Source: Pelomyxa schiedti (lineage: Eukaryota; Protista; Evosea). From it: 64,000 nt of DNA. Below, piece by piece: positions 46,882 through 62,373 of the stretch (position 1 is the first letter of the stretch; each line of letters starts with the position of its first letter). A model generated the notes under the pieces. It was not told the DNA's origin. It saw nothing but the letters and a program-made list of their open reading frames with translations, and searched no databases. The DNA is taken from contig JAHLWZ010000579.1 of NCBI GenBank assembly GCA_020536535.1, positions 62,001-126,000 on the forward strand, read 5' to 3'. The position numbers and the translations under genes were made by a program.

Positions 46882-48529
46882 ATGTCGAAACCGGTACACA
46901 GCGATAGGAGCGACCGCAACGAATCTGACGATGTGTCATTGAGAGATGCCGAAGCGGAAGACAACGTCGCGGACGAGAAAGAAAACAAGGGCACCGAGGA
47001 AAGTAACAGCGATGTCGATGTAGATGGAGATGAGAATGATGAAAACGGGGACGAAGAAGAGGAGGAGGATGAAGATGAGAGCGAGAAAAAGAGCAAGAAT
47101 AAAAATAAGAATGGGGGCGAGGGCGAAGAGAAAGGAATTGATGAAGATTCTTGTAGTAAGAGATACGCTGCCCGACGCAGAAACACTCCCCGTGAACAAT
47201 GGAAGAGAGAGGAGGAAGAGATGAGGGAGAGCGTGCTCTTTTCGTATGTGTTGCTGCTTCATTTGGCTCTTTGTCTTCACTAACAGTGATTACTGCAGAT
47301 ACAGGCCGCGGCCACGACCTCAGTGCGAAACCCTCTTGTCGGCTCAAGACCAGTTTCTTGCCTTTCTCATGGCGTCACACAAGAGATGCGGAGTTGGGAG
47401 CCCTGCCCACGTTATGTGTGCGAACACCACTTTGCTGAAAGACCTCTGTGACATCTGGGTGAACAACAGAGGCACTCGCTTACAGAAGTTCGCAATTATA
47501 GTGTCGCCGCAACAGTCTATTGGCGTTCCACTGGGTGCCTTTGCCCATTGGTTCTTTGAATGTCAAATATCTCGTGCCCTGGGTGGAATCACTTTGAAAG
47601 AGCAGTTTTGGTTGAAATTGTGCCGAGCAAGAAAAACAAGGGACTTCATTGATACAACCACACACAAAGATGGGACCACAAGCATCTATTTTGAACCTGA
47701 GCCTTATGGTAACTATGGCGCACACTACAGGCTACTCATGACACACGTTAGAGCCGATTTCATGAATGATGTATTTTACAAATGGACCACAAACTGGAAG
47801 TGGTGGGTAAACAACGTCAGCAAGGACAACTGTGCCACTGTGGCAATTGAGAACCTTTTTGACCTGGAACCAGAGAAGAATCGCAGAGTCGTGACACTCC
47901 CAATCAAAGGATCCATCATTGACGTCAGATTCAACCACGCCAACGTTGACGAGGCTTATGTTATTTTCAACAACCCATCTGACAGTAAAGGAGACACTGG
48001 TCCTGAAAGTGGGCTCACAACTACCACATTTGCTGTCATTGACTTGGCGAAAATACATCAAACGGGAGAGCTTGTATTGTTGAGTGAAACAAGGTGTTCC
48101 TTTCCTGGGAAATACAAGGACTCCCTCATTTTCAGGCAACAAACAGGTGCCGGTACTTACATTGTGCAATCCAGGGAGGAGGAGAAGCAATATGATACTA
48201 TATTTGTTGTGGACGGAACAACCGGGGAACTGCAGAACCTCACATGCGGAACAAGTCTCGACGCGGTGACCAATACCGTTTTTCAAGTGGGGATGCAAAG
48301 CTTCTTCACGCTCAACCGGAACCAAGTCCCAGTTGATTTGTGGAATGTTGAGGCAGAAGGAGCCATCACACCCTTGCGCTACGTTGAGCTCATGAATCCT
48401 GGGGATGAGGAGGAGGTAGGTGGCTTGGCTGTCAGCTGCGACAGAACCTACACCATTCAAGTTGCTGTCAAGCAAAAAGGAGCCCCAACCCGTGTACTTG
48501 CTCGCTTTCCATTGACTAAGCTCTCCTGA
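46882..48529 (+). CDS. Uncharacterised protein: acidic N-terminus, 'HxRCG' module, beta-rich (propeller-like) C-terminus
   Basis: ORF 46882.. joins ORF ..48529 through a phase-2 intron (gtatgt...ctaacag, ~47244-47287); contains SAQDQFLAFLMASHKRCGVGSPA. Confidence 0.75.
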
Positions 48530-48752
48530 AGGTATCCCAGAGCACTCTCCACAATACGTATGTTATATTAACGGGATATCAGGCAAACAAAAAGGGCATC
48601 TACGTTTCAGCAAGTCTAGCCTTTATCTGAACCCCCCCCCCCCCGCACAGTGAGCGTAAAGGGGAAAAAATAAACCTTTGTTGCTTTTTTCCAGATCCGA
48701 ATTTTGCTTTTTTAAAGGGAAACAAAAAACCTATTCAACTCGGAAGCGGTGG

Positions 48753-51088
48753 ATGATGGCGTCGCTAACGAAACACGTACGAAAAGAAGCATAGAATTTA
48801 AAATTAAGCACGAGCACAAATGAACCGTTTGTTTCTCTTTTTCTTTTTAATTTTGTATGGTAGTTGCATAGATCGCACACTCCGGAACAACAACAAGCTA
48901 TTATTGCTGGGCCTCCTGAAATTAGGCGCGAGGATATTATTTTCAACCCTGCAACTGACAAACTTGGGGGAGGTGCATATGGCGATGTCTATAAAGGTCT
49001 GTACAATATACGGCATATATAAAACCTGATTCTTTTGTAGCAATTGTTGCTGGCATCCCTGTAGCTGTAAAAGTGCCAAAGAAGCAACTGTGGAGCACCC
49101 CAGCGGAGTTGGCTGCCTTTAGAGAGGAAGTCAGAATGCTCAAGTTGGACCAATTCTTTTTTTTTTTTTTAATCTAATTCACCACAGGAGTATCTTCCAT
49201 ACCAACGTTGTACTTTACATGGGTATGATAATCATGGTCCCTCCTGCTTTTCATTGATATCTAGGTGCGTGCACGATGGAGAATAACGTAATGATTGTCC
49301 TCGAGAAGATGCTTTGTGATGCGGAAAAAATTCTTCACAATCCTGCACATGTGCCTGTAGAATTGCAGAAGTATGTACAAGGCGGGCTTTCTCTTCCAAA
49401 CAAGCTCAAAATGGCTCATGACACTGTAAGTTTGATTTTGTTTTCAACGTTCTCACATGTACCAACACTTAGGCTCTTGGTATTGCATGGTTGCACAATA
49501 TTGCGCATGTTGTTCACAGGTAAATCCCTTCAACAAGAGTTCTGATTTATGTTCTTTTTCAGAGATCTTAAACCTGCCAATTTACTACTTGATGCTTACT
49601 TTAATGTGAAAGTATGTAATATTCTTGTGAGTTACTTTTCACTTCCTTTTTCTACCTTTAGGTGTCTGATTTCGGTTTCAGTCAGTTCTTCCAACCAGGG
49701 AAAAACAGCATTTCCACCAAAGAACCTGTAAAAGGAACAAGTTGTCTAGCGTTGCTCTTTATCTTAGCATTTAATACCTTTTTTTAGAGCTCTACTTAGC
49801 TCCAGAGGTATGGCATTCTACACCTGCTTCTACTGCATCCGACGTGTATTCTCTACTCCTTTTAGATAGAACACTCATAAGTATAGGTATGCATTTGGTC
49901 TGATGTTATGGGAAATGTATACCGAGGAGGAGCTGTTCAGTTCCTATTCCGAAGTTGAACCGTTCTACAATGACATTATCGTTAATGGGCTACGCCCCAC
50001 AATCCCGCCCACTGTGCCTCACCCCCATGCCACTAATCCACCACCTCCTGTCCCCACTTTGCCGTCATTGGTAAACTACTATCCAGAGATTCCCTCTTGA
50101 CCTTACTTAGGTGACTTTAATTACATCCTGTTGGGATGCTAATCCAGCCAAGGTCATTCCCTTTTTTTCATTTTACATCTAAATTCTACTTTCAGAGGCC
50201 CAATATCTCGCAAGTCCTCGAGCAGTTGGAGACAGTTATGATAGAAAGTGAAATAACCTCACCACTTGCCCGTGCCTTCTGGAAAAAGCACTTTGGCTCA
50301 CTTAGTGGGGCTACGACTGGTCTTCAAGTGATGGTTCCTTGGGACCGTTTTGCCGCCGTTGTAGCAGCCGAGTCTCATGTACCAGTTTCCAGTTTCAGGG
50401 ATATGTCCCAGATAGCATGTGGTATGAATGTGAGAGCTCTTTTTTTTCGTCTTATTCACCATTGCACAGCTACAGAAGATACTGCTGCCGTCACCATGTC
50501 GCGATTTGATCTGCTGGAGAAGTGGTTTGGACCTTTTTGGCTTCCGGCAAACGTACACCTTCTGCAAGAGGTATGCCCCCAACATTACTACAAAACCCTC
50601 CTAATGAACGGCAGATGAATACGCTGGCAAATCAATCGTACTCACGTGCCTGTGGCTTTTTCTTCTCTTTCTAACCAGTCTTCAGGTGGTTTGCACCATT
50701 CGCTTGCAAGGAGGATTCTGATGCGTGGTTGACTTCACGTGCACATGGAACCTTCATTGTACGGCTGAGTACCAATGCACCAACAAGCTACCCTGTCACA
50801 ATCTCCAGGCGCCAAGGCACTGAAACATTCCACAGAAGGTTTGTTCGTTTACAAACCACCTCCTTACTCATCTTCATTCTCAAACAAACAAACAAACAAA
50901 ATAGAGTGAAGCGAATCAGCTATGACAATGTTCCACAGAGGTACTCATATGACACAGAGCTATCCCCAACACCACTGGCATATGCCACACTCCCACAATT
51001 GGTTGCGGAGCTACAGCGCCTTGGTGAGGTCACAATCCATTGCCCTCAGTGTGCTGTTGGTGGGGGTTACCAGCACTCCCGTTCCTAA
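48753..51088 (+). CDS. Shk-type TKL protein kinase with C-terminal SH2 domain
   Basis: GPPEIRREDI..LGGGAYGDVYK, VAVK, HTNVVLYMGAC, HRDLKPANLL, VSDFG, LAPE, DVY..AFG; ARAFWKKHF linker; SH2 WF..GTFIVRLS. This is the Dictyostelium ShkA-E architecture. Confidence 0.9.
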
Positions 51089-51180
51089 GTCCCTCGCCTC
51101 AGTCTTGTTTGTGTTTTGTCAAGAGATTTATCAATTCTTTCAAATTTATTGTTCGTTGAATTTGCCCAATTTTGATGATC

Positions 51181-53087
51181 ATGGGAGATTACGCCGACTA
51201 CGTGGACACCTTGTTGGCGCGAGTTGAGGATGTTTTTTCGTTGTTGAGTGACAGGAGGTGTTCATCCTTTTCTTTTACATGTGCTTTTTTTTTCGGCTCC
51301 GTTTATGTGAGTGGTTGCATTGTACATTAGGCCAAGTCCCACAATAATGTTTTAGGGAAACACTTGCTGTGATAAAGGAGACCACTGCAGATAACTTCTG
51401 GGGTGTGGACATCAGCACATCGTCGGCTTTTTTTGTCAGTATTTGTGAGGCACTACTTGAAGTGGCGTTCCCACAAATTCAGCAACAACAGCCGATACAG
51501 TCGGCATCAGCTGCCAAACCAAAATCAAAGGGGGGTCGTTCTGCTGCAGTTGCATGTGTGCCATTTTTCACCAGGGCGAGGCAGGCACTCGAATCTGTAC
51601 AGTACAACGATCTGGCCAATTTGTTGAGGCAGTGGGAGAATCAGCCAATTCAGCCCACGCCGGACGAGTCCAGAGCCCGGCTGAGCCTGCTAGGTATTAT
51701 GACGTCACGTCCATCCCGTTTTGGGATTTTCCACTGGGTTTTCTCACTCGACTCATGGAAATTGGAATTTAGAATTTTTGGTGTCTGAGGCACAGGCAGA
51801 GATGCTCCTGCGATCAGAAAAACCAGTCAGTACTCAACAGGTTTGTTGTGTCATATCATATCATACCATACCCCCAGCCCCCTTCTCTTTCCCCCCACAC
51901 CGCACACCTCAGTTTCCGACAATGGAGTGGTTGTTCAGGATCCCCTGAGTGATTGTAAGAGTAGAATAGCCAATTCAATTCAGCTATCTCACACTGCATC
52001 GACTCCATTATTTGAAGTTCTAAGTGCAGCAAATGCAACGGTAGGAACCTTTTTTTTTGTTTGAAAAAAATAAGAAATAACGAGGATTAGGTCTCCGAAG
52101 TACTGAAGAGATATCCCCAGTATCTAGGACCATGTTTGATTAACCCAACCTCATATTCACAGATGGAACAGGTATGGTTTGTTGGGAATCCTTCATACCC
52201 CAACTGAACAACAGGATAAAATTACTGTTGTAGCCAAAGCTATGAGTGATGACTACCATCTACGCAGCGAAGGTATCTATCTACTTTCCTTTCAAACTCT
52301 TAGATGAAACAGTGCTCCTAAAAAGATGTGAAGTTACTCTACAAAGTTTTCTGTGGTCTCCAAAGGGAAAGGTTCACTCGACTCTAATCGATTTTATCTC
52401 ACTTCGGCATAGGAAAATGAAGTTCAAATTACCGCTCTTGTTCAGAAATTACACTCTATAAAACATCCTACAAATACTTCATTCGCTGATGTATTGTGTG
52501 CCCATGCCTATTTGACCTCCCTTCCCAAAGTGGGAGCAAATAAGGATCTACACAAAAAGTCCATTCTCAGAAATCTTATCATTGGAGAGGTACTTCTAGT
52601 GTATACCTTGTCTCTCTGTTCAACTAGAAGTTAGGTACCCGACCGAGGTGGTAGACCACAGGAAACTCAACCTGACCTGCGGGATATTTTTCCCTACTCC
52701 AGTGGAGGAGCCAGAACTTCTGCCGTGCGATCAGGGAGGCCCCTGCACCAACAACAAACACAACCACCCCAGTACATACCACCCCCACAGCAACAACATC
52801 AACAGCATCAGGTACCGCCCCCTCAAATGTACCAATCTCAACCCCAACCTCAACCACAATCCCACAACCATCAGCCCACCATTATCATCACCAAGACCAC
52901 ACAGGGAGGTGGTGCCCCCACGATCAGCCGAGTGCAAGGAGGGTGGAAAACTGGAGGAGGGGGTGGGAGTGCAACAAACACAACCACCGCGTACCAACCA
53001 AATACCAATCCAGGATGGGGCTATGGTGGCGGCGGCTCAGCCAACTATGGCAGAGGAAGAGGTAGAGGAAGGGGCAGGGGCTGGTGA
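51181..53087 (+). CDS. FAM98: FAM98 family protein (tRNA-ligase complex subunit) with Q/P-rich and RGG tail
   Basis: DYHLRSEVLLKRCEVTLQSFLWS and IIGE|VPDRGGRP signatures; C-terminal GRGRGRGRGRGW. Confidence 0.88.
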
Positions 53088-53379
53088 TTACTGGTTGAAT
53101 AAGCGGGAAGAAACAAGTTCTTCTTGCGTCATTTTAGGTTCCATTCTCGATATCCATTCTGTTATCCAGAGCACACCACCCAAGGAAGCCAAAAAAAAAA
53201 AAGAAGTCTTCTTTGCTCCCATCAGAATTTCTATTTTTCTATTCATGCCGAGAACCACCAACCAACGCAAATTGCCTGCTCGGCAAGTTGCGCTTCCCGA
53301 ACCCTGCTCATAACGGTTCAGCCGTCAACCACTGACATCTCATAAACAAAACCAAAAAAATCCCCACGCGCAAGCAACC

Positions 53380-54590
53380 ATGATCGACCCCACGACGACA
53401 TCCGCCAGCACCACCAGGATTGGCCCGCCTCCTCTGCCCGAGCTGGGCGTCGCGACGCGGCTCAGCGCGAGCTCGCAGTACATCTCGTTCGCGCTGTGCC
53501 TGAGCCCGCGCGCGGGGGCCCGCAGCGCGGCGGGCCTGCTCACGCCGCCGCTGGTGCACTACATCGCGAGGAAGTACGTCCTCGGGGGGCGCCACGTCGC
53601 GCTCAAGTTCTACGTGCCCGGGCGCCCCGAGCTCGGCCGCGCCGAGGACACGCTGTACGTCTCGCTGTTCGTGTCGCCGACGCTGGGCGTGACCCGCGGG
53701 TGTCCCGCGTCCCCGGCGACGTGCTCGGGTGGATCGACGAGCGCACCGCCATCGTGATGCTGGAGATGCGCGTCAGGATCTGGGACGTCGACGAGGCCAG
53801 GTTCGTGCACTCGATGCAGTACTCTCCCACAATCAGCCTGCAGCAGTTTGTGTGCAACAAGCGGTGGATCGTGTGCGTCGACCGGGCCACCCGCCGCCTC
53901 TTCATCTGGAAGGTTTCGCCCGGTGGCGGCGGCAGCAGCAGATCCCCGGTCCCGGTCGAACCCCCAGTCTCGGCCGAGATCTTCCCGCCGTGGGACGAGG
54001 CCAAGCTGCACTTCACGGCCACCGAGGACGGAATCTCCACGTGCGACGAGCTGTCGATTCTGCTAAAGGACACCGAGGCCACCAAAGGCTGGTACCTGCA
54101 GAAACTGGACCTTTCCAGGGCCTTTGGCGAGGCCGACGCGTCGTCGGCTGTGTGCCTGCCGATAATCTGCCACGACAACACACCCAACAGGGAAATCCTG
54201 CCGTGCAACAAGACTCTGGTGGCCAAGGGGACTCTGATTGTGCCGTTCCTGAACCCTGACACGACCTCGGCTTACTTGATAAACGTGGACAAGAACAAAG
54301 CCAGGCGCGTGCCGAACATTTCGGTGATTCATTGCATAGACATCACGCACTTTGGCTTGGTGCCCACCACGAACACCAGCTCCCTGGTTGTGTACCACAC
54401 GCACACGTACCCCACGCCGACGTTCACCCACAAAATCCCTGGGAATTACCGCTGTGGGCACGGGTTTATATACCACCATCAGAGGACTTCTACGCACAAT
54501 CAAGTAATGCAAGTTATAGACGCCACATCCGGCACCGTGGTACTTACCCTCTCAGGCTTCATCCTGCAGTTCTTTGTGTATGTTTATTAG
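53380..54590 (+). pseudogene. Intronless 'HxRCG-module' family gene with an apparent 1-nt frameshift near 53698 (pseudogene or sequencing error)
   Basis: ORF 53380..53757 is protein-like up to VSPTLGVTRG; ORF 53496..54590 is protein-like from VSRVPGDVLGWIDE. Adding one G to the GGG at 53698-53700 joins them. Confidence 0.6.
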
Positions 54591-54686
54591 CGCGTGTAAA
54601 GTAATTAATTACCTGTTTTGGATACTCTGTTACTTGCGTACACCCAAAAGAGAAAAAAACCTTTTGGAAGAAAAAAAAACCAATCA

Positions 54687-57600
54687 ATGTCCACCTGCAA
54701 TACAACAACAGGAAGTCCCCCCACAGAAACAACCAAGGGCAGTGGTTCAAGAGGGCTTACAATTTCAAAGAAGCTGGGCTATGTGGTCACAAACTTTGGG
54801 CTGGAATTCGCGGCTAGTGTGTGGGGCCTGTTTTGCATTCATTTTATGACAGATGTGGCTGGGTTGAGTGCGGCCAAGGCTGGATGGGTGTGTGGGGGTG
54901 TTTCTTGCTTTACTACTCTATGTTTCTACAACGAGGGTGGTTTTTTCATAGTGTTCTGATTCCAAACCTTCTTTTTTGGGGTGCTTCAAAAGGTCAATAT
55001 GTTGTATAGGTGGTGGGGTAGGACCTTTCATTGCCTGTAAAACTGTAATTTACTTGGTCTACAGATGCTCTGAATGACCCGATTGTGGCACAGATGTCTG
55101 ATCACACTCATCACAGGATGGGAAGGAGGAGACCCTATATGATGTATCTTATTTTTTAACATTACTTCAATTCCACTTACTTGGTTATCCATTCCACAAT
55201 TCAGGTACATGGCTGTTCCTTACGGCATCTTGTGGTTCATCAATTGGTTTGTACCAAGTTCGAGTCAATGGGCCCTGTTTTGGTGGTTCCTACTCATTCA
55301 ACTGGTATTCAATATGCTTTCTTTTTTTGATAATCTAAGTGTAAAAATGTAGGGTTCCGACTTAGCTTTTACGTGTATCAATGTGCCTCATCTCGCACTC
55401 CTTAATGATCTTACCGACGACTATAAAGAGCGATTTCAAGTAAACACATTGCGTATAGTAGCTTCTGTGTGTGGCCAAGTGACCTCTTTTGTCATGGTGG
55501 CAATTCTTACCTCACTTATAACCAATGTATCAAGGCGATTTCAGGTTTGATTACCCTTCTATGGCAACTATATCCTTGTGGATTATAACATGAAAGAAAG
55601 GTGATTGGGCTATTTGTGTGCGTAGTGATTATTGTATGTGTAGAGACAAGTGTCTATTGTACCGCCGGAGCTGCGCACTCCCAACCACCTGTAGAGCAAA
55701 CCCCAGCTCATTCGATGTGGATTCTTAACAGCTTGATAACAATGGGAAGATCGATGAAACTCTTGCTATCTGTGCAAGAGTACAGAGTGACTCTTGGTTC
55801 GTATTATTATAGTCTTTCCGAGAATGAAATAACGTCAGCAAGGGATTTACGTTTTGAGTTCCGTCTGTATGCAACTCTCTCTTGTCATGGTTCCCTATTT
55901 CCTTCAGGTTTCTTTTTGGTTGTTCACTGTTTGGATTTCACTTATTGCTCTTCTTCTGTAACACAGAAGTTCATGTGGCTTCCAATGATCGAGACAGTGA
56001 AGATTTCCATTATAACCCTAGTATTTGCGCTTATTGCAGCAGTCACAATTCTTCGGTTGCTAAAGAGAGTTGATAAACGAACCCTTTATTTTGCCAGTGC
56101 TTCTGCCTGGGTGCTGTTCTACATCCTTGGATTTTTCTTAGTGGGAAGAGTAAGCACTTCCATCTGAGTGAAGTATCTCACTCACGACAGACAAACTATT
56201 GGACGGTCCTCTTCCTAATCCCCCTTCTGGGAACTGGCACCGCTGCCACCTTCTTAATTCCCTTTTCAATGTTAAATGACAGTGCCGATTATGTAGAACT
56301 ACATACTGGGAAGAGAATGGATGCACTGGCATTTGGCTTAGCGCATGCCTCTCAAAAATTCACTCTTGGCTGTGCTGTGTTCATTTTTGAGACTGTTCTG
56401 GCAGTGAATGGATACAGCCCCAATGACTACCATGTATTTTCTAACTCCTTTTTGCGTCTCTCACGTCAGATCAAAGAATGCAGAAGATGTCCCAGTTAGA
56501 GTTTTATGGGCAATTAAGCTTATGTTCACACTTTTCCCTCTCGGGTTACTCACAACTGCACTTGTGGTGAACATTTTCAACCGAATAAGTGCTGTATCTC
56601 ATGAAGCTGTTCTACAGCAACTGAAGCACGATAGTGAAAAAGGGTCACTACAGGGTAACCATTTTACTTGTATTCATTTCTGATTTTATAAGGGAGGAGT
56701 ATTGGTTCTCCACCTTTCATTACATACTTCCTTTTGGATGGTGTACGTTCCGATATCTTTAGTCAAGAACTAGATGCTGGCAATTTGCCTAACCTCAGAG
56801 AACTTATTCATAGTGGTACGTTTGTGCGAAATGGAATCACTGCAGTCCCAAGGTTTCCTTCAAAAATTGTTTGTTTTTCCCTTACCTTCTTGGTTAGTAT
56901 CACTGGATACGCCTTTATCCCCCATATCACTGGTCAGGATGCTGCGGCTAGTGGGGTTCTAGGATTGCGCTGGTTCAATCGGCAATTAGCCATTGGGAAT
57001 GTTAGGTCGTATGTGGGCAAGACAAATGTCAACATGGATTTGGACCTATCTAACCGCTTGGTGACTGTATTCGAGCACCATGTGAATCAGCACTCGACAA
57101 CATTTCAGAGCTGTATGAAGATCCCACTTTACCCATTACTCATGGGAAATATCAGATATGACCCGTGGAGCTGAAGTTATCAATCATTTTGGATGGCCTG
57201 TGACAACAGCGAAATACATTGGCCATCATTGGCTGTTCAATATTCTGAGCAAGATTCCTTTTGTATGCAAAAACTGGTTCAGCTATGAGTCCTTTATTAT
57301 AGATGAAGCTATCAAAGGTGAAGGGTATGCATCCTACAATTCACACTGACTCAAAAGTAGATCTTGCTCAACAACCTAAAGTTCAGTGGATAACTCTCGC
57401 TAGTCCAGATGGCGTTGTCCATATGGAAGGGGTAACAAAGAAATACCGAGACCTTTTGGTGCACCTTGATACAGAGAGTGTGTAGAAGTAACTGGTGTTT
57501 ATTGTACTAACTTGCGCAGTTGGAAGGTACCGAAAAGCTAGCAAACAGTTAGGCCAAGAGGAATCACGAATTTACTGTGTAATAAGGTCGCCATACCTCC

Positions 57601-58783
57601 TAAGCACCTCACAGCTAAACCCTCCCAGTGACCATGGAATGAGTGATGTTCATCATAATATTGAAGTCACATCAGAATTACAGGTGAATTGTTTACTGAG
57701 AAGTATTTAAAAATAAAAAAACCGCTAGGCACACTATAGTTTCCGTGCATTCCGTTGTACACCATCCACAAATATTCTCAGCAGCAATCTTGACACACCT
57801 TGTGCCTTTTATAATAACTTTGACGTGATCAACTGCATTAATGGGAACCTTATGAGTTTCTTGTACTTCAAGCATCCAACATTGGGGTGGAGGCATTCCC
57901 CAGAATATCAGCATTTACTTGCTTACCCCGCACCAAATGGAGAACTGGTTTTTTCTTTCACATGGAAATGCGAAATCATAACGCATAGTCAGGTCAATCT
58001 ACCAGAAGTGTTCTTGAAAACTCCCGGAATTCGATTTGTTCTGTTGAGGGCATCTTCACCTCTCACCGTTCTTCTCCTAAGTATACATGGGAAGGCAGAG
58101 GTATGTCAACTTTACTATGGCGAAATTAACTCGCCTAGCTAAGTTCTCCTGATGGTATATCTTTTTCCTACACTGTGGAGTCGGAAGATCCACTACAAGA
58201 GGGAACTAAACCATATCCACTGTCTAACACTGGCCTGTGAGTAGATGCAACCGCCGTTTTGATGTGAAAATTTCACTAATATCTGGGCAGCCATCACATC
58301 AGGGAGTGGTTAGCCAGTACTTATGATTCAGCTTTTCCCTTGGCACCCTGCAGACTTTGGAGATTGTTTTTCAATTCCTATGCACAGACAGGTTTCATTC
58401 CCTTCTTCTCCTTATCAGTTTCCAGCATAGTTATTTACTTTGCTGAAAATTCAAAAAAAGGTGACATCGTGCTCGTGGCTTCCGATCTCTACGATTTTGG
58501 AGAAAATTATGAAGTTTTCACTGGGAACTACCGTGGTGGACATGGTGGAATCTCACACGAGCAACTGTGCGTGCCATTTATCCTCAGCGGCCCTGGAGTA
58601 AAACCAGGGGTAGTTCTGGACACAGCACTGGCAGAAGATGTGGGACAAACTGTGCTGCATCTGTTGGGATGTACAATAAGTGAGATATCTCTGCCCCCTT
58701 TTTTTTATTCTCCCTCTCAACTACTACTAGACAGCAACCCTGAAGCCGGCGTTGTACTCTCCCCAGCCCTGGAACACAATTAA
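54687..58783 (+). CDS. GPH/MelB-type MFS transporter fused to an alkaline-phosphatase-superfamily nucleotide pyrophosphatase/phosphodiesterase domain
   Basis: KKLGY..FMTDVAGLSAAKAG, DALNDPIVAQMSD..GRRRPY, SMLNDSADYVELHTGKRMDA (GPH); then YFLLDGVR, LPNL, AVPSITG (Thr nucleophile), DGVVH, SDHG, GDIVL, GGHGG, VPFILSGPG, DVGQTVLHLLG (NPP). Linked by a phase-1 intron at ~56655-56692. Confidence 0.85.
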
Positions 58784-58923
58784 ATGCCTTTTTAATGCTA
58801 GTTTGTTGGTTTCGTTAAAACACGTTTGCTTTGGCATAATTACCAACTTTTTGCTTCTTTTTTTCAGCACAGTTGTGTGAAACACACAATTAAACTCATC
58901 CCTTGCTCCATCTTAGCACAGAA

Positions 58924-59688
58924 TCAAGGATATCTCGCTGCCAAGATTCCAACGAATCTCTCCACAACATCAATGTTTTGAATTGGAACGTACTGCGGAT
59001 CATGTTCAAGAAGGAGTGCATGGTATTGTCGGTAATGAAGAAACTTTACGGCAGTTACTTCAGTTGCCTGAAGTCTCATTGTGCTTATGTCAAGTCCATC
59101 CATTTGCAAAAGATACACATCAACCCATTCCTGGGGAAAAAGTTGGTGTGTGAGGCCTGTTGGAGGGAAGGTTTACCTTGTTGATAAATGTACCACCGTT
59201 CAGTACAAAACTCTGGAAATGTGTAAATAGCAGCTCGAGCTTGGAACCATCAACAACGAGGCCAAGCTCCTCTTCCAATTCCCTCAACGCACTCTCTCTG
59301 CTATCATCCCCAGCGGAGATGTGTCCAGCTTGTGACCAACTGTAAATAACCGGAACGGTACAATGGCATTGTGCACTATGGGTCACACCTTACCTGAGGA
59401 TATATCCCACATTCCAGGAAAGGAATCTTTCTTCCAATGCCTCTGCTGCAACAATAGGTTTCCCTTGCTGCATTTTGCAATTGTTACAACAATGTTGCGA
59501 AAGCTCATTCGCGAATAGCATTTTTTTCATTTGGGAATGGGTCGGTGGCGGCATCACCTGTCCACTATCCAGGTGTGCACGACTCTGTGTGGTCTCCCTT
59601 CCTTGTGGGCCTGCGATCTCGTCACAACTCGCCCCGTTTTTGCCCCTGTCGTCTCGTCCAACTCATCAAAGCACTCTTCGGTGGCCAT
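58924..59688 (-). CDS. Nudix hydrolase (IDI-like subgroup)
   Basis: AHKEGRPHRVVHTWI, LLLQQRHWKKDSFPGMWDISS|AGHISAGDDSRESALRELEEELGL (Nudix box), LQATEV. Confidence 0.92.
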
Positions 59689-59947
59689 TTCTCTGTACAA
59701 TCACAGATTCGGCCTCGGCTTCGCGTATCTCTGCTGTGATAAGTAGCACAAGTTACCATCTTCGTAATATCCGAACAGAACAAAGAGTTGGTGAGTTGGG
59801 TAGTCACAAGTAGTACTGAGTTGGAATTTTCTGAACTCGGCTTCATAAAGCGGAATTTTCGCAAGAAAAGCTTTCTTTCACAATTAATTTAAAATAAAAA
59901 CACAACAACACACGCAATACACGCTTCGCTTCTTGATTGCTACTACA

Positions 59948-60676
59948 ATGGAGAACAACAACAACGAGACGTCATCGATGAGCGACCTACTTACTGAGTA
60001 CGCAATCCAAGAAAATGGATCTTTCTTGAGTTCTAACTTTCAATCCTCGTGTTGTCAACAACACGCAACAGCAGCAAACAAACAACATCAATGTCGTGAC
60101 TCTACTTCATCTACAAGTTCCCCTACGACATGTTGTTTCGTTTCCGATAGAAAGTTTGCTGATGGACGGTTGTTGAAACAACCCGAAGGATTCGACGACA
60201 AGAATGACAACACCGCTTCCGAATGCGGTAATTGCAACTGCTTTCCTGGTACTTGTTCAAGTTCTTCCTCAACAACAATGAGCTGTAGCAGCAGCCAAGC
60301 TAACAACGAGGTTATTTGCTATACAATTCCAGACTTCGTTGCAATAAGAAAATCACTGTGCGACGCTGCGGCGCTTGCTTCTCTTTCTAAAGAACTGGAC
60401 AGCTTGTGGGTATCACCTTCCCACACCAAAGCTCCAACACCAACACCAACAACTATCGGTGAGAATATCGCCGAGAGCAGAAGCAGCAATCACCACGCAG
60501 AAAAAAACAGTCACCTTATGATGAATCACCCACGCATTCAACAAACAAAACCGGTGTCACCCTACCAACCAAGTGCCGCACCTCAGAGGAGAATACGGCG
60601 CTACTGCAACCTTGAAGTCAATGACTTCCCCAGCAATGACCTCCCGGCATTGGAATGTTGTTGCACAAATCATTGA
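59948..60676 (+). CDS. Intronless Ser/Cys/Asn-rich hypothetical protein
   Basis: Open frame of about 242 codons from ATG 59948, flanked by AT-rich spacers; no recognised domain. Confidence 0.55.
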   Translation: MENNNNETSSMSDLLTEYAIQENGSFLSSNFQSSCCQQHATAANKQHQCRDSTSSTSSPTTCCFVSDRKFADGRLLKQPEGFDDKNDNTASECGNCNCFPGTCSSSSSTTMSCSSSQANNEVICYTIPDFVAIRKSLCDAAALASLSKELDSLWVSPSHTKAPTPTPTTIGENIAESRSSNHHAEKNSHLMMNHPRIQQTKPVSPYQPSAAPQRRIRRYCNLEVNDFPSNDLPALECCCTNH

Positions 60677-60860
60677 CACTCTTCAATGATTCAAACCAGA
60701 CCAACCACATCCCAAACAACAGGGGTGTGCCACTGTATTGTATTTTTATCCAAAAAACCAAAGAAATTAAAACAAAATAAACCCAAGTAAAACTTGAAGG
60801 AACCTTTTCTTTTCGTTCACGCGTTTTCCGGTTTTTTCGAAGGTGTCACTACTGTTGGGA

Positions 60861-62373
60861 ATGTTTGTGGTTCCAGCACTGAGAGGTGTTGTGTCACTGG
60901 ACGCGGAAGTGTTACAATTCCGCAGAGTTATTACATTTCTGTGTGGTTACCACCCGCGATGCGGCTCGAACAGGTTTTTCAATTTAGTTTCTATTTTACT
61001 CCAGGTGACCGACTTGAAAGTTGGGTCTGGAACCTGCCTCCTCATTGTGCACAAAGAGTCGTGGCTCTATTGGGAATATTGCCAACCTGTACTTTTTTTT
61101 TAACCCCTTTGCGTTCATTTTCGTCACCCTTTAAGGTCAGGCGTGGGTTGAATTCCAAGACGCTGTCAATGTGAAATGTGTGGTTGTTTGTCAACACAAT
61201 ACATCATCCCCCATTAATTAAAGCCTAGACATCCTTCAAAAACATCCATACGAACAAGATTCAACAAAGCAGACCCTATATTGGTACTACTCAGAATCTC
61301 ATATTTTTAAAAATACCTATCCTTTTTTATTTTTCCTAGGAGGGAGACAGCCAGTACCAGTCTTTCAAGACGTTCCCTATCAGTACTCACCACTTTCGTG
61401 TCCACCACTCTCCGTGATACCCTTGCGGATTGCGTTTGTTGGGGATTCCTTGGTTGGAAAGGTTTTGTGGAGTGTTTAGCTTAACCTCTCACTATCACAC
61501 AGACATCTATATTGTATTCCTTCACCAACAATTGCTTCCCAGGTTTTTTACATTTTAGAGACAAATAAAGCCCACTGAAGTCCACTAAGATGACTATGTG
61601 GGCACTACATTTGATTCTTTCTCGACTAATCTAGTCTATCACGGGACTTGTAAAAATTTACTGGTATAACCTTACAAACTGGCGTTCTAACATCAATTAC
61701 ACCAGATGCTTGACACAAGTGGTGCAAAGGGAAAAAACGAATTTAGATTACGAAGTACCACCATTTCCTCCTCAACTCCCTCCCTCCTATTTTGCCCGAA
61801 ACTAATTACCAGGCTATGCATGTGCACAATGTGTTGTTCTTTGTTTCAATTGTGTTGATAGAGAATCTCTCGAAAGCTGCAAAAATTTCTGGTACAACGA
61901 AGTCATTGAATATTGCCCAAGTATGTAGCCGGTTCTCCCCCCCCTTTTTTTTCTGCATTGATTCTCCAAGATGTACCCAGACTTCTTGTGGCAACGAAAT
62001 ATGGTACACTTTTTCCCCTCACAATCTTATACTAACTATAGACCCTTTCAAATAGACATCCCAACACTTCATGAGCCAAATGGCCCCCCAATGGTTTCAA
62101 AGGATACAATTGAAGCTACTTCCAAACAGATGGGCTGCTTCTCTACCCAATGTGGCTTTTCTGAAAGAACTATTTCTTCTCTCTGATAATTCGCTCTAGA
62201 TTGCAGTGCCTGGACACAGGAAGGCCTGATAGGTACATTTCACACAATTCTCTCCCGCATTGGTGTGTGAGTTGCAATCGATGCAATTGTACTCACATTT
62301 TGCCAGGCTCCTAAGTCAAGTTCGCGCCTCGAGCTGCAAATCTAGTTTGGCCATAGCGGAAGTGCTGGGATAA
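60861..62373 (+). CDS. Atypical Rho-family GTPase with N-terminal 'HPRCG' module; no CaaX
   Basis: Spliced: ..ITFLCGYHPRCGSN|SWVWNLPPHCAQRVVALLG..; LRIAFVGDSLVGK|T (G1), DDYVGTTFDSF (switch I), LDTSGA (G3), VATKY|D (G4), CSAWTQEGL (G5). The last splice and stop are uncertain (62345 or 62373). Confidence 0.78.

Follow-up and report, generated by a model that had tools for sequence, protein, structure and literature searches.

Substrate receptors of cullin-RING ubiquitin ligases come in several layouts. In ASB and WSB proteins the tag lies C-terminal to ankyrin or WD40 repeats, and in DCAF proteins a helical tag precedes a propeller. In the F-box proteins of Skp1-cullin-F-box (SCF) ligases, a short helical tag is carried on WD40, LRR, ankyrin or propeller domains, with large expansions in particular lineages; the domains that partner F-box and BTB tags have been described (PMC4327156). 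The precedents extend to mimics: PRANC, the truncated F-box of poxviruses and Orientia, sits C-terminally on ankyrin proteins, and Legionella AnkB is an effector with an F-box, ankyrin repeats and a CaaX end (PMC2916131, PMC6232478). Here I describe a module of about 40 residues carried by three genes of the protist Pelomyxa schiedti, all in one stretch of 64,000 nucleotides (contig JAHLWZ010000579.1, positions 62,001 to 126,000, forward strand; the window, from whose first nucleotide positions are counted below). Its layout is that of ubiquitin-ligase adaptors and of mimics such as PRANC and AnkB, and by this analogy it probably works as F-box and SOCS tags do.

The module and its copies in Pelomyxa

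The three genes and their modules are as follows.

46882..48529, + strand: gene 1 (Pelo_7301), an acidic N-terminal exon (46882-47243), an intron (47244-47298), then the module and a divergent predicted beta-propeller
53380..54590, + strand: gene 2, intronless, the module and a predicted beta-propeller of the same family as that of gene 1
60861..62344, + strand: gene 3, 13 exons, about 302 aa, the module and an apparent atypical Rho/Rac-like GTPase
47339..47467, + strand: module copy 1, AlphaFold2 (AF2) predicted local distance difference test score (pLDDT) 91; matched by the bacterial profile, E=2.9e-7
53464..53586, + strand: module copy 2, matched by the held-out hidden Markov model (HMM), E=1.5e-8
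60915..61075, + strand: module copy 3, split by an intron (60974-61020) that is also present in the paralogue L067

The module is a real feature. Copy 1 runs from a helix through an HxRCGxxSP turn to a short helix and then an amphipathic helix, and the residues most strongly conserved among copies are the H, R, G and S of HxRxGxxS. In isolation it is predicted by AF2 to fold alone, with helices at residues 4-14, 25-29 and 32-42. Its sequence matches nothing in Pfam, NCBIfam or the Protein Data Bank (PDB), its predicted fold found no family or fold with Foldseek against PDB and BFVD, with VIA-align or in the ESM Atlas, and no description of the motif turned up in the databases and papers searched.

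An earlier reading of the letters alone (the sequence-only reading) had picked out the segment in all three genes, and all three are borne out. The second is recovered by a held-out profile, that is, one built from the genome matches of the gene 1 segment with genes 2 and 3 excluded. The third is harder to see, as only the half in its first exon could be scored (12 bits, E=0.018 in a search of the window), and it is upheld through L067. The same reading expected a large family across the genome, and so it proved. Within the assembly (52.4 Mb, 5,337 scaffolds, 19,876 proteins; PMC8887013) the gene 1 segment has at least 150 matches, and a profile of 66 module sequences returns 1,617 first-look candidates, the 150th of which still scores 60 bits. 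Because other short profiles yield just 4-9 candidates each in the same genome, the number of copies may be put at about 1,500, alleles or fragments possibly among them. Word-indexed searches for homologues gave matches limited to Pelomyxa or bacterial ankyrin proteins.

What do the copies sit upon? A typical Pelomyxa member has the module at its N-terminus, followed by a tail of about 340 residues. The AF2 model of one member (pLDDT 90) consists of helices and then an all-beta domain, and the latter resembles beta-propellers (Foldseek E ~1e-9, VIA Z 13-15). Most copies lie N-terminal to a single divergent, mostly intronless family of predicted propellers, found in tandem arrays with some broken copies. 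Genes 1 and 2 both belong to it: an HMM of the family's tails alone scores gene 1 at E=4e-24 and gene 2 at E=7e-16 but finds the reversed sequence of neither, so the two are paralogues with homologous propeller tails. The claim that the three proteins share a module and otherwise differ therefore stands for the module and for gene 3, but not for genes 1 and 2. In gene 2 the open reading frame (ORF) of the module and that of the propeller are separated by a frameshift near 53690-53700, which is either an assembly error or the mark of a pseudogene. Single Pfam matches to Sel1, IF4E, Macro, kinase and other domains in Pelomyxa gene models possibly come from fused neighbours and were excluded as partners.

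Within the family, purifying selection on the module exceeds that on the tail. Median identity is 42% in the module against 25% in the tail, and the pooled ratio of nonsynonymous to synonymous substitution rates (dN/dS), over 14 independent pairs, is 0.31 against 0.43; an overall dN/dS above 1 was not seen in those pairs.

Then there is the matter of gene 3. Its exon chain begins at 60861 and reaches a stop at 62344 without loss of phase (exon 9 starting at 61813), the GT-AG introns measuring about 41-58 nt each. The four introns nearest the 3' end are confirmed by an RNA contig, whose coverage ends short of the module and of intron 60974-61020. Read exon by exon, the GTPase has a P-loop (G1), a G3 with alanine in place of the catalytic glutamine, G4- and G5-like motifs and no CaaX end; in an exon-by-exon Pfam search one exon matches Ras, at E=0.007, below the cut-off. 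The paralogue L067 (contig C423) has module, linker and GTPase in the same order, and its first two introns agree with those of gene 3 in position and phase. The proposed fusion of module and Rho GTPase is thus sustained by the in-phase chain and by its apparent recurrence in L067. The comparison with RhoBTB, to which Dictyostelium RacA may be added (PMC8305917), goes part of the way: gene 3 too would be an atypical Rho/Rac protein lacking CaaX and bearing a putative cullin-recruiting element, but its module is N-terminal, the whole is about 302 aa, and no BTB domain follows the GTPase, the exon chain stopping directly past it. A further divergent copy, at L068, is followed by an apparent spliced propeller of NHL type, as judged by eye.

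Copies beyond Pelomyxa

The module was first supposed to be lineage-specific, and this has to be given up. A profile search of 1.84 billion representatives found a few proteins outside Pelomyxa, and those lie on bacterial contigs. The bacteria are inferred to be Dependentiae because one module contig carries an ATP synthase marker common to Babeliales/Dependentiae genomes, a 326-aa c-subunit gene of tandem fused units (L087:13100-14080, - strand). Six of the 261 genomes of that phylum have the module, with 28 matches in total. Most of the bacterial proteins carry ankyrin or WD40 repeats, open with a signal-peptide-like stretch and have the module close to their C-terminal end, and 8 of 32 module ORFs end in a CaaX-like Cxxx; they may be secreted and prenylated. 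Bacterial and Pelomyxa module profiles align with each other by hhalign (probability 98.6%, E=9e-16), and in the reciprocal search the bacterial profile recovers gene 1. The bacterial copies are thus homologous to those of Pelomyxa.

Metagenomes supply more. A pattern scan gave 54 distinct copies, 35 of them no more than 50 aa from the C-terminus (some 20 other matches were discarded as members of a bacterial family that has a CPxC motif and is unrelated). Their partners include ankyrin, RCC1, WD40, LRR and actin along with many orphan domains, and the folds that bear the module are unrelated, with the module at either chain end and in some cases present twice in a protein. The idea of one fixed module combined with varied interaction domains is well served by this: propeller, ankyrin, WD40, RCC1, LRR and Rho are all among its partners. 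One LRR protein with the module clusters at 90% with a protein of Teleaulax amphioxeia, which places the module in a cryptophyte alga. Other copies lie on contigs that are dense in genes, free of introns and rich in orphans and that also carry genes for TBP, ubiquitin, RING and MYND proteins, and these virus-like contigs are read as large eukaryotic DNA viruses, though scans of IMG/VR concerning them were empty. Eight related ones (L138, L151, L169, L170, L175, L187, L196 and L203) share orthologues of one gene that has the module in its middle part, and several of them have an orphan ORF of 670-760 aa nearby. In a marine metagenome (L144:1373-2842, - strand) the module is N-terminal to a divergent but full actin fold (Pfam Actin, E=2e-93).

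What the module may dock upon

A constant tag, varied partners, attachment at either chain end, a huge expansion in one host, and parasite proteins with signal-peptide-like and CaaX-like ends make a single conserved host partner plausible. I propose that the module is a docking tag of cullin-RING ubiquitin ligases, and hold this to be somewhat more probable than its negation; Skp1 is the favoured partner, at a little short of even chances. The autonomous helical tag would bind one conserved adaptor of the ligase, and the attached domain (propeller, ankyrin, WD40, RCC1, LRR or Rho) would pick the substrate for ubiquitination. The second half of the module would act as an F-box consisting of helix 1 only, with the conserved first helix and HxRxG turn standing in for the missing F-box helices. 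Expansion in Pelomyxa would have produced a very large repertoire of receptors, and parasites of protists would mimic the module.

As to the ligase machinery, the Pelomyxa genome encodes no fewer than 148 canonical F-boxes, along with four Skp1 genes in two closely related pairs (by Skp1_POZ search) and seven clear and two weak cullin loci:

G000, contigs C497, C527, C987, C16, C128, C554, C1309, C187 and C632: cullin loci

The likeness to the F-box suggested by the sequence-only reading survives only weakly, in the last helix of copies from outside Pelomyxa. Bacterial and metagenome copies show there the hydrophobic spacing of F-box helix 1, whose signature is L-P-x-E-h-h-x-x-I, and hhalign aligns the non-Pelomyxa profile with helix 1 and its preceding loop over 19 columns, better than with any of 100 column shuffles. 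Much weighs on the other side. The probability of that alignment is just 10%, and its F-box profile holds only about 10 sequences. The Pelomyxa profile does not align with helix 1 at all. Pfam profiles for F-box, F-box-like, PRANC, SOCS and BTB match none of 97 modules (66+31). The fold search, weak at 47 residues, reached a best Z of 3.6 with no F-box among the best 50 matches. The proline typical of F-boxes occurs in 4-27% of modules as against 82% of F-boxes, and the most conserved H, R, G and S fall outside the F-box-like part, in an extra upstream helix and turn that F-boxes lack. F-box helices 2-3 (V-C-x-x-W) are absent, the module stopping after its helix-1-like part; a circularly permuted F-box was considered and dropped, only helix 1 having aligned. 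By the tests run, the module appears to fall outside both the F-box and the SOCS families. Weak similarity does not exclude an F-box-like function, however, because a poxviral F-box reduced to helix 1 retains Skp1 binding (PMC4353913).

Of described systems, PRANC resembles the bacterial copies in being C-terminal on ankyrin proteins. AnkB (PMC2916131) is likened to them by its make-up: ankyrin or WD40 repeats, a tag of eukaryotic type and a CaaX-like ending occur together in proteins of bacteria that presumably live inside protists. The differences are that the module is C-terminal and not a canonical F-box, that its proteins have signal-peptide-like N-termini and that their bearers belong to another phylum.

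Might the module dock instead upon a common hub of the host that has no part in the ubiquitin system, such as a chaperone, a phosphatase or a component of trafficking or membranes, and so localise diverse proteins? The HxRxGxxS core is unlike any known cullin-adaptor motif, and many of the partners in metagenomes are orphan domains, not repeat scaffolds. But the recognisable partners are mainly the classic substrate-binding repeats, and some 1,500 copies with variable tails, together with use by intracellular parasites, make up the pattern usual for ligase receptors. I consider such a hub rather unlikely.

Less probable still is a variant of the cullin-ligase proposal, in which the tag serves not Skp1 but Elongin B/C with Cul2/5 (SOCS/BC-box-like) or DDB1 with Cul4 (as an H-box-like helix-loop-helix). 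The architecture suits it: a tag of about 40 aa past ankyrin or WD40 repeats, as in ASB, WSB and poxviral ANK/BC proteins, and a helical tag before a propeller, as in DCAF proteins, where the resemblance is one of architecture only. Cryptic viral BC boxes also exist (PMC6232478). Against this, the pattern [TSP]-L-x3-[CSA]-x3-hydrophobic is not enriched in three sets of modules (3/66, 1/31 and 8/52, with 9.5, 3.2 and 5.2 expected from shuffles), on which ground a BC box was rejected. The SOCS_box profile matches no module, and the Skp1_POZ search found no Elongin C in Pelomyxa, where exons split by introns could be missed. For the SOCS/BC-box likeness raised by the sequence-only reading, the tests thus came out negative.

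It is improbable that the module is a structural cap or passenger with no common partner, spread by gene duplication, retrotransposition and horizontal transfer, for although the Pelomyxa family is mostly intronless and arrayed in tandem with broken copies, selection constrains the module more than the tail and the module, predicted to fold alone, recurs on unrelated folds at either end, at times twice per protein.

Nor do the three genes form a local system, which is ruled out by unrelated neighbours and a density near the genome background. Their clustering is only mild (P ~0.01 for 3 copies in 15.5 kb, ~0.28 in the 64-kb window), and three copies in the window are unremarkable because the genome holds about 1,500 per 52 Mb. 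Between genes 1 and 2 lies a multi-exon tyrosine-kinase-like gene (48760-51090, + strand) with an apparent C-terminal SH2 domain of Shk type by eye, Pfam scans of its single exons being blank. Past gene 2, MFS (major facilitator superfamily) sugar-transporter-like exons continue into an alkaline-phosphatase/phosphodiesterase-like region (54690-58783, + strand; exon scans blank), possibly as one fused gene, and a NUDIX hydrolase gene follows (59120-59750, - strand; Pfam E=3e-5).

If the module does dock upon cullin ligases, then about 1,500 Pelomyxa genes that now lack annotation would gain a function through one motif. Some of the ankyrin and WD40 proteins that Dependentiae secrete, and whose role has been stated to be unknown (PMC6561590), would likewise gain a mechanism open to testing. 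A further step, doubtful at present, is that the module represents a new class of cullin-RING receptor motif, apart from F-box, SOCS/BC, BTB and DCAF, that occurs in protist lineages far from one another and has been taken up by bacteria living inside cells and by large DNA viruses of protists; if so, it has expanded to several percent of Pelomyxa genes. Under any of these hypotheses, a tag of 40 residues is small enough that one pull-down could reveal its partner.

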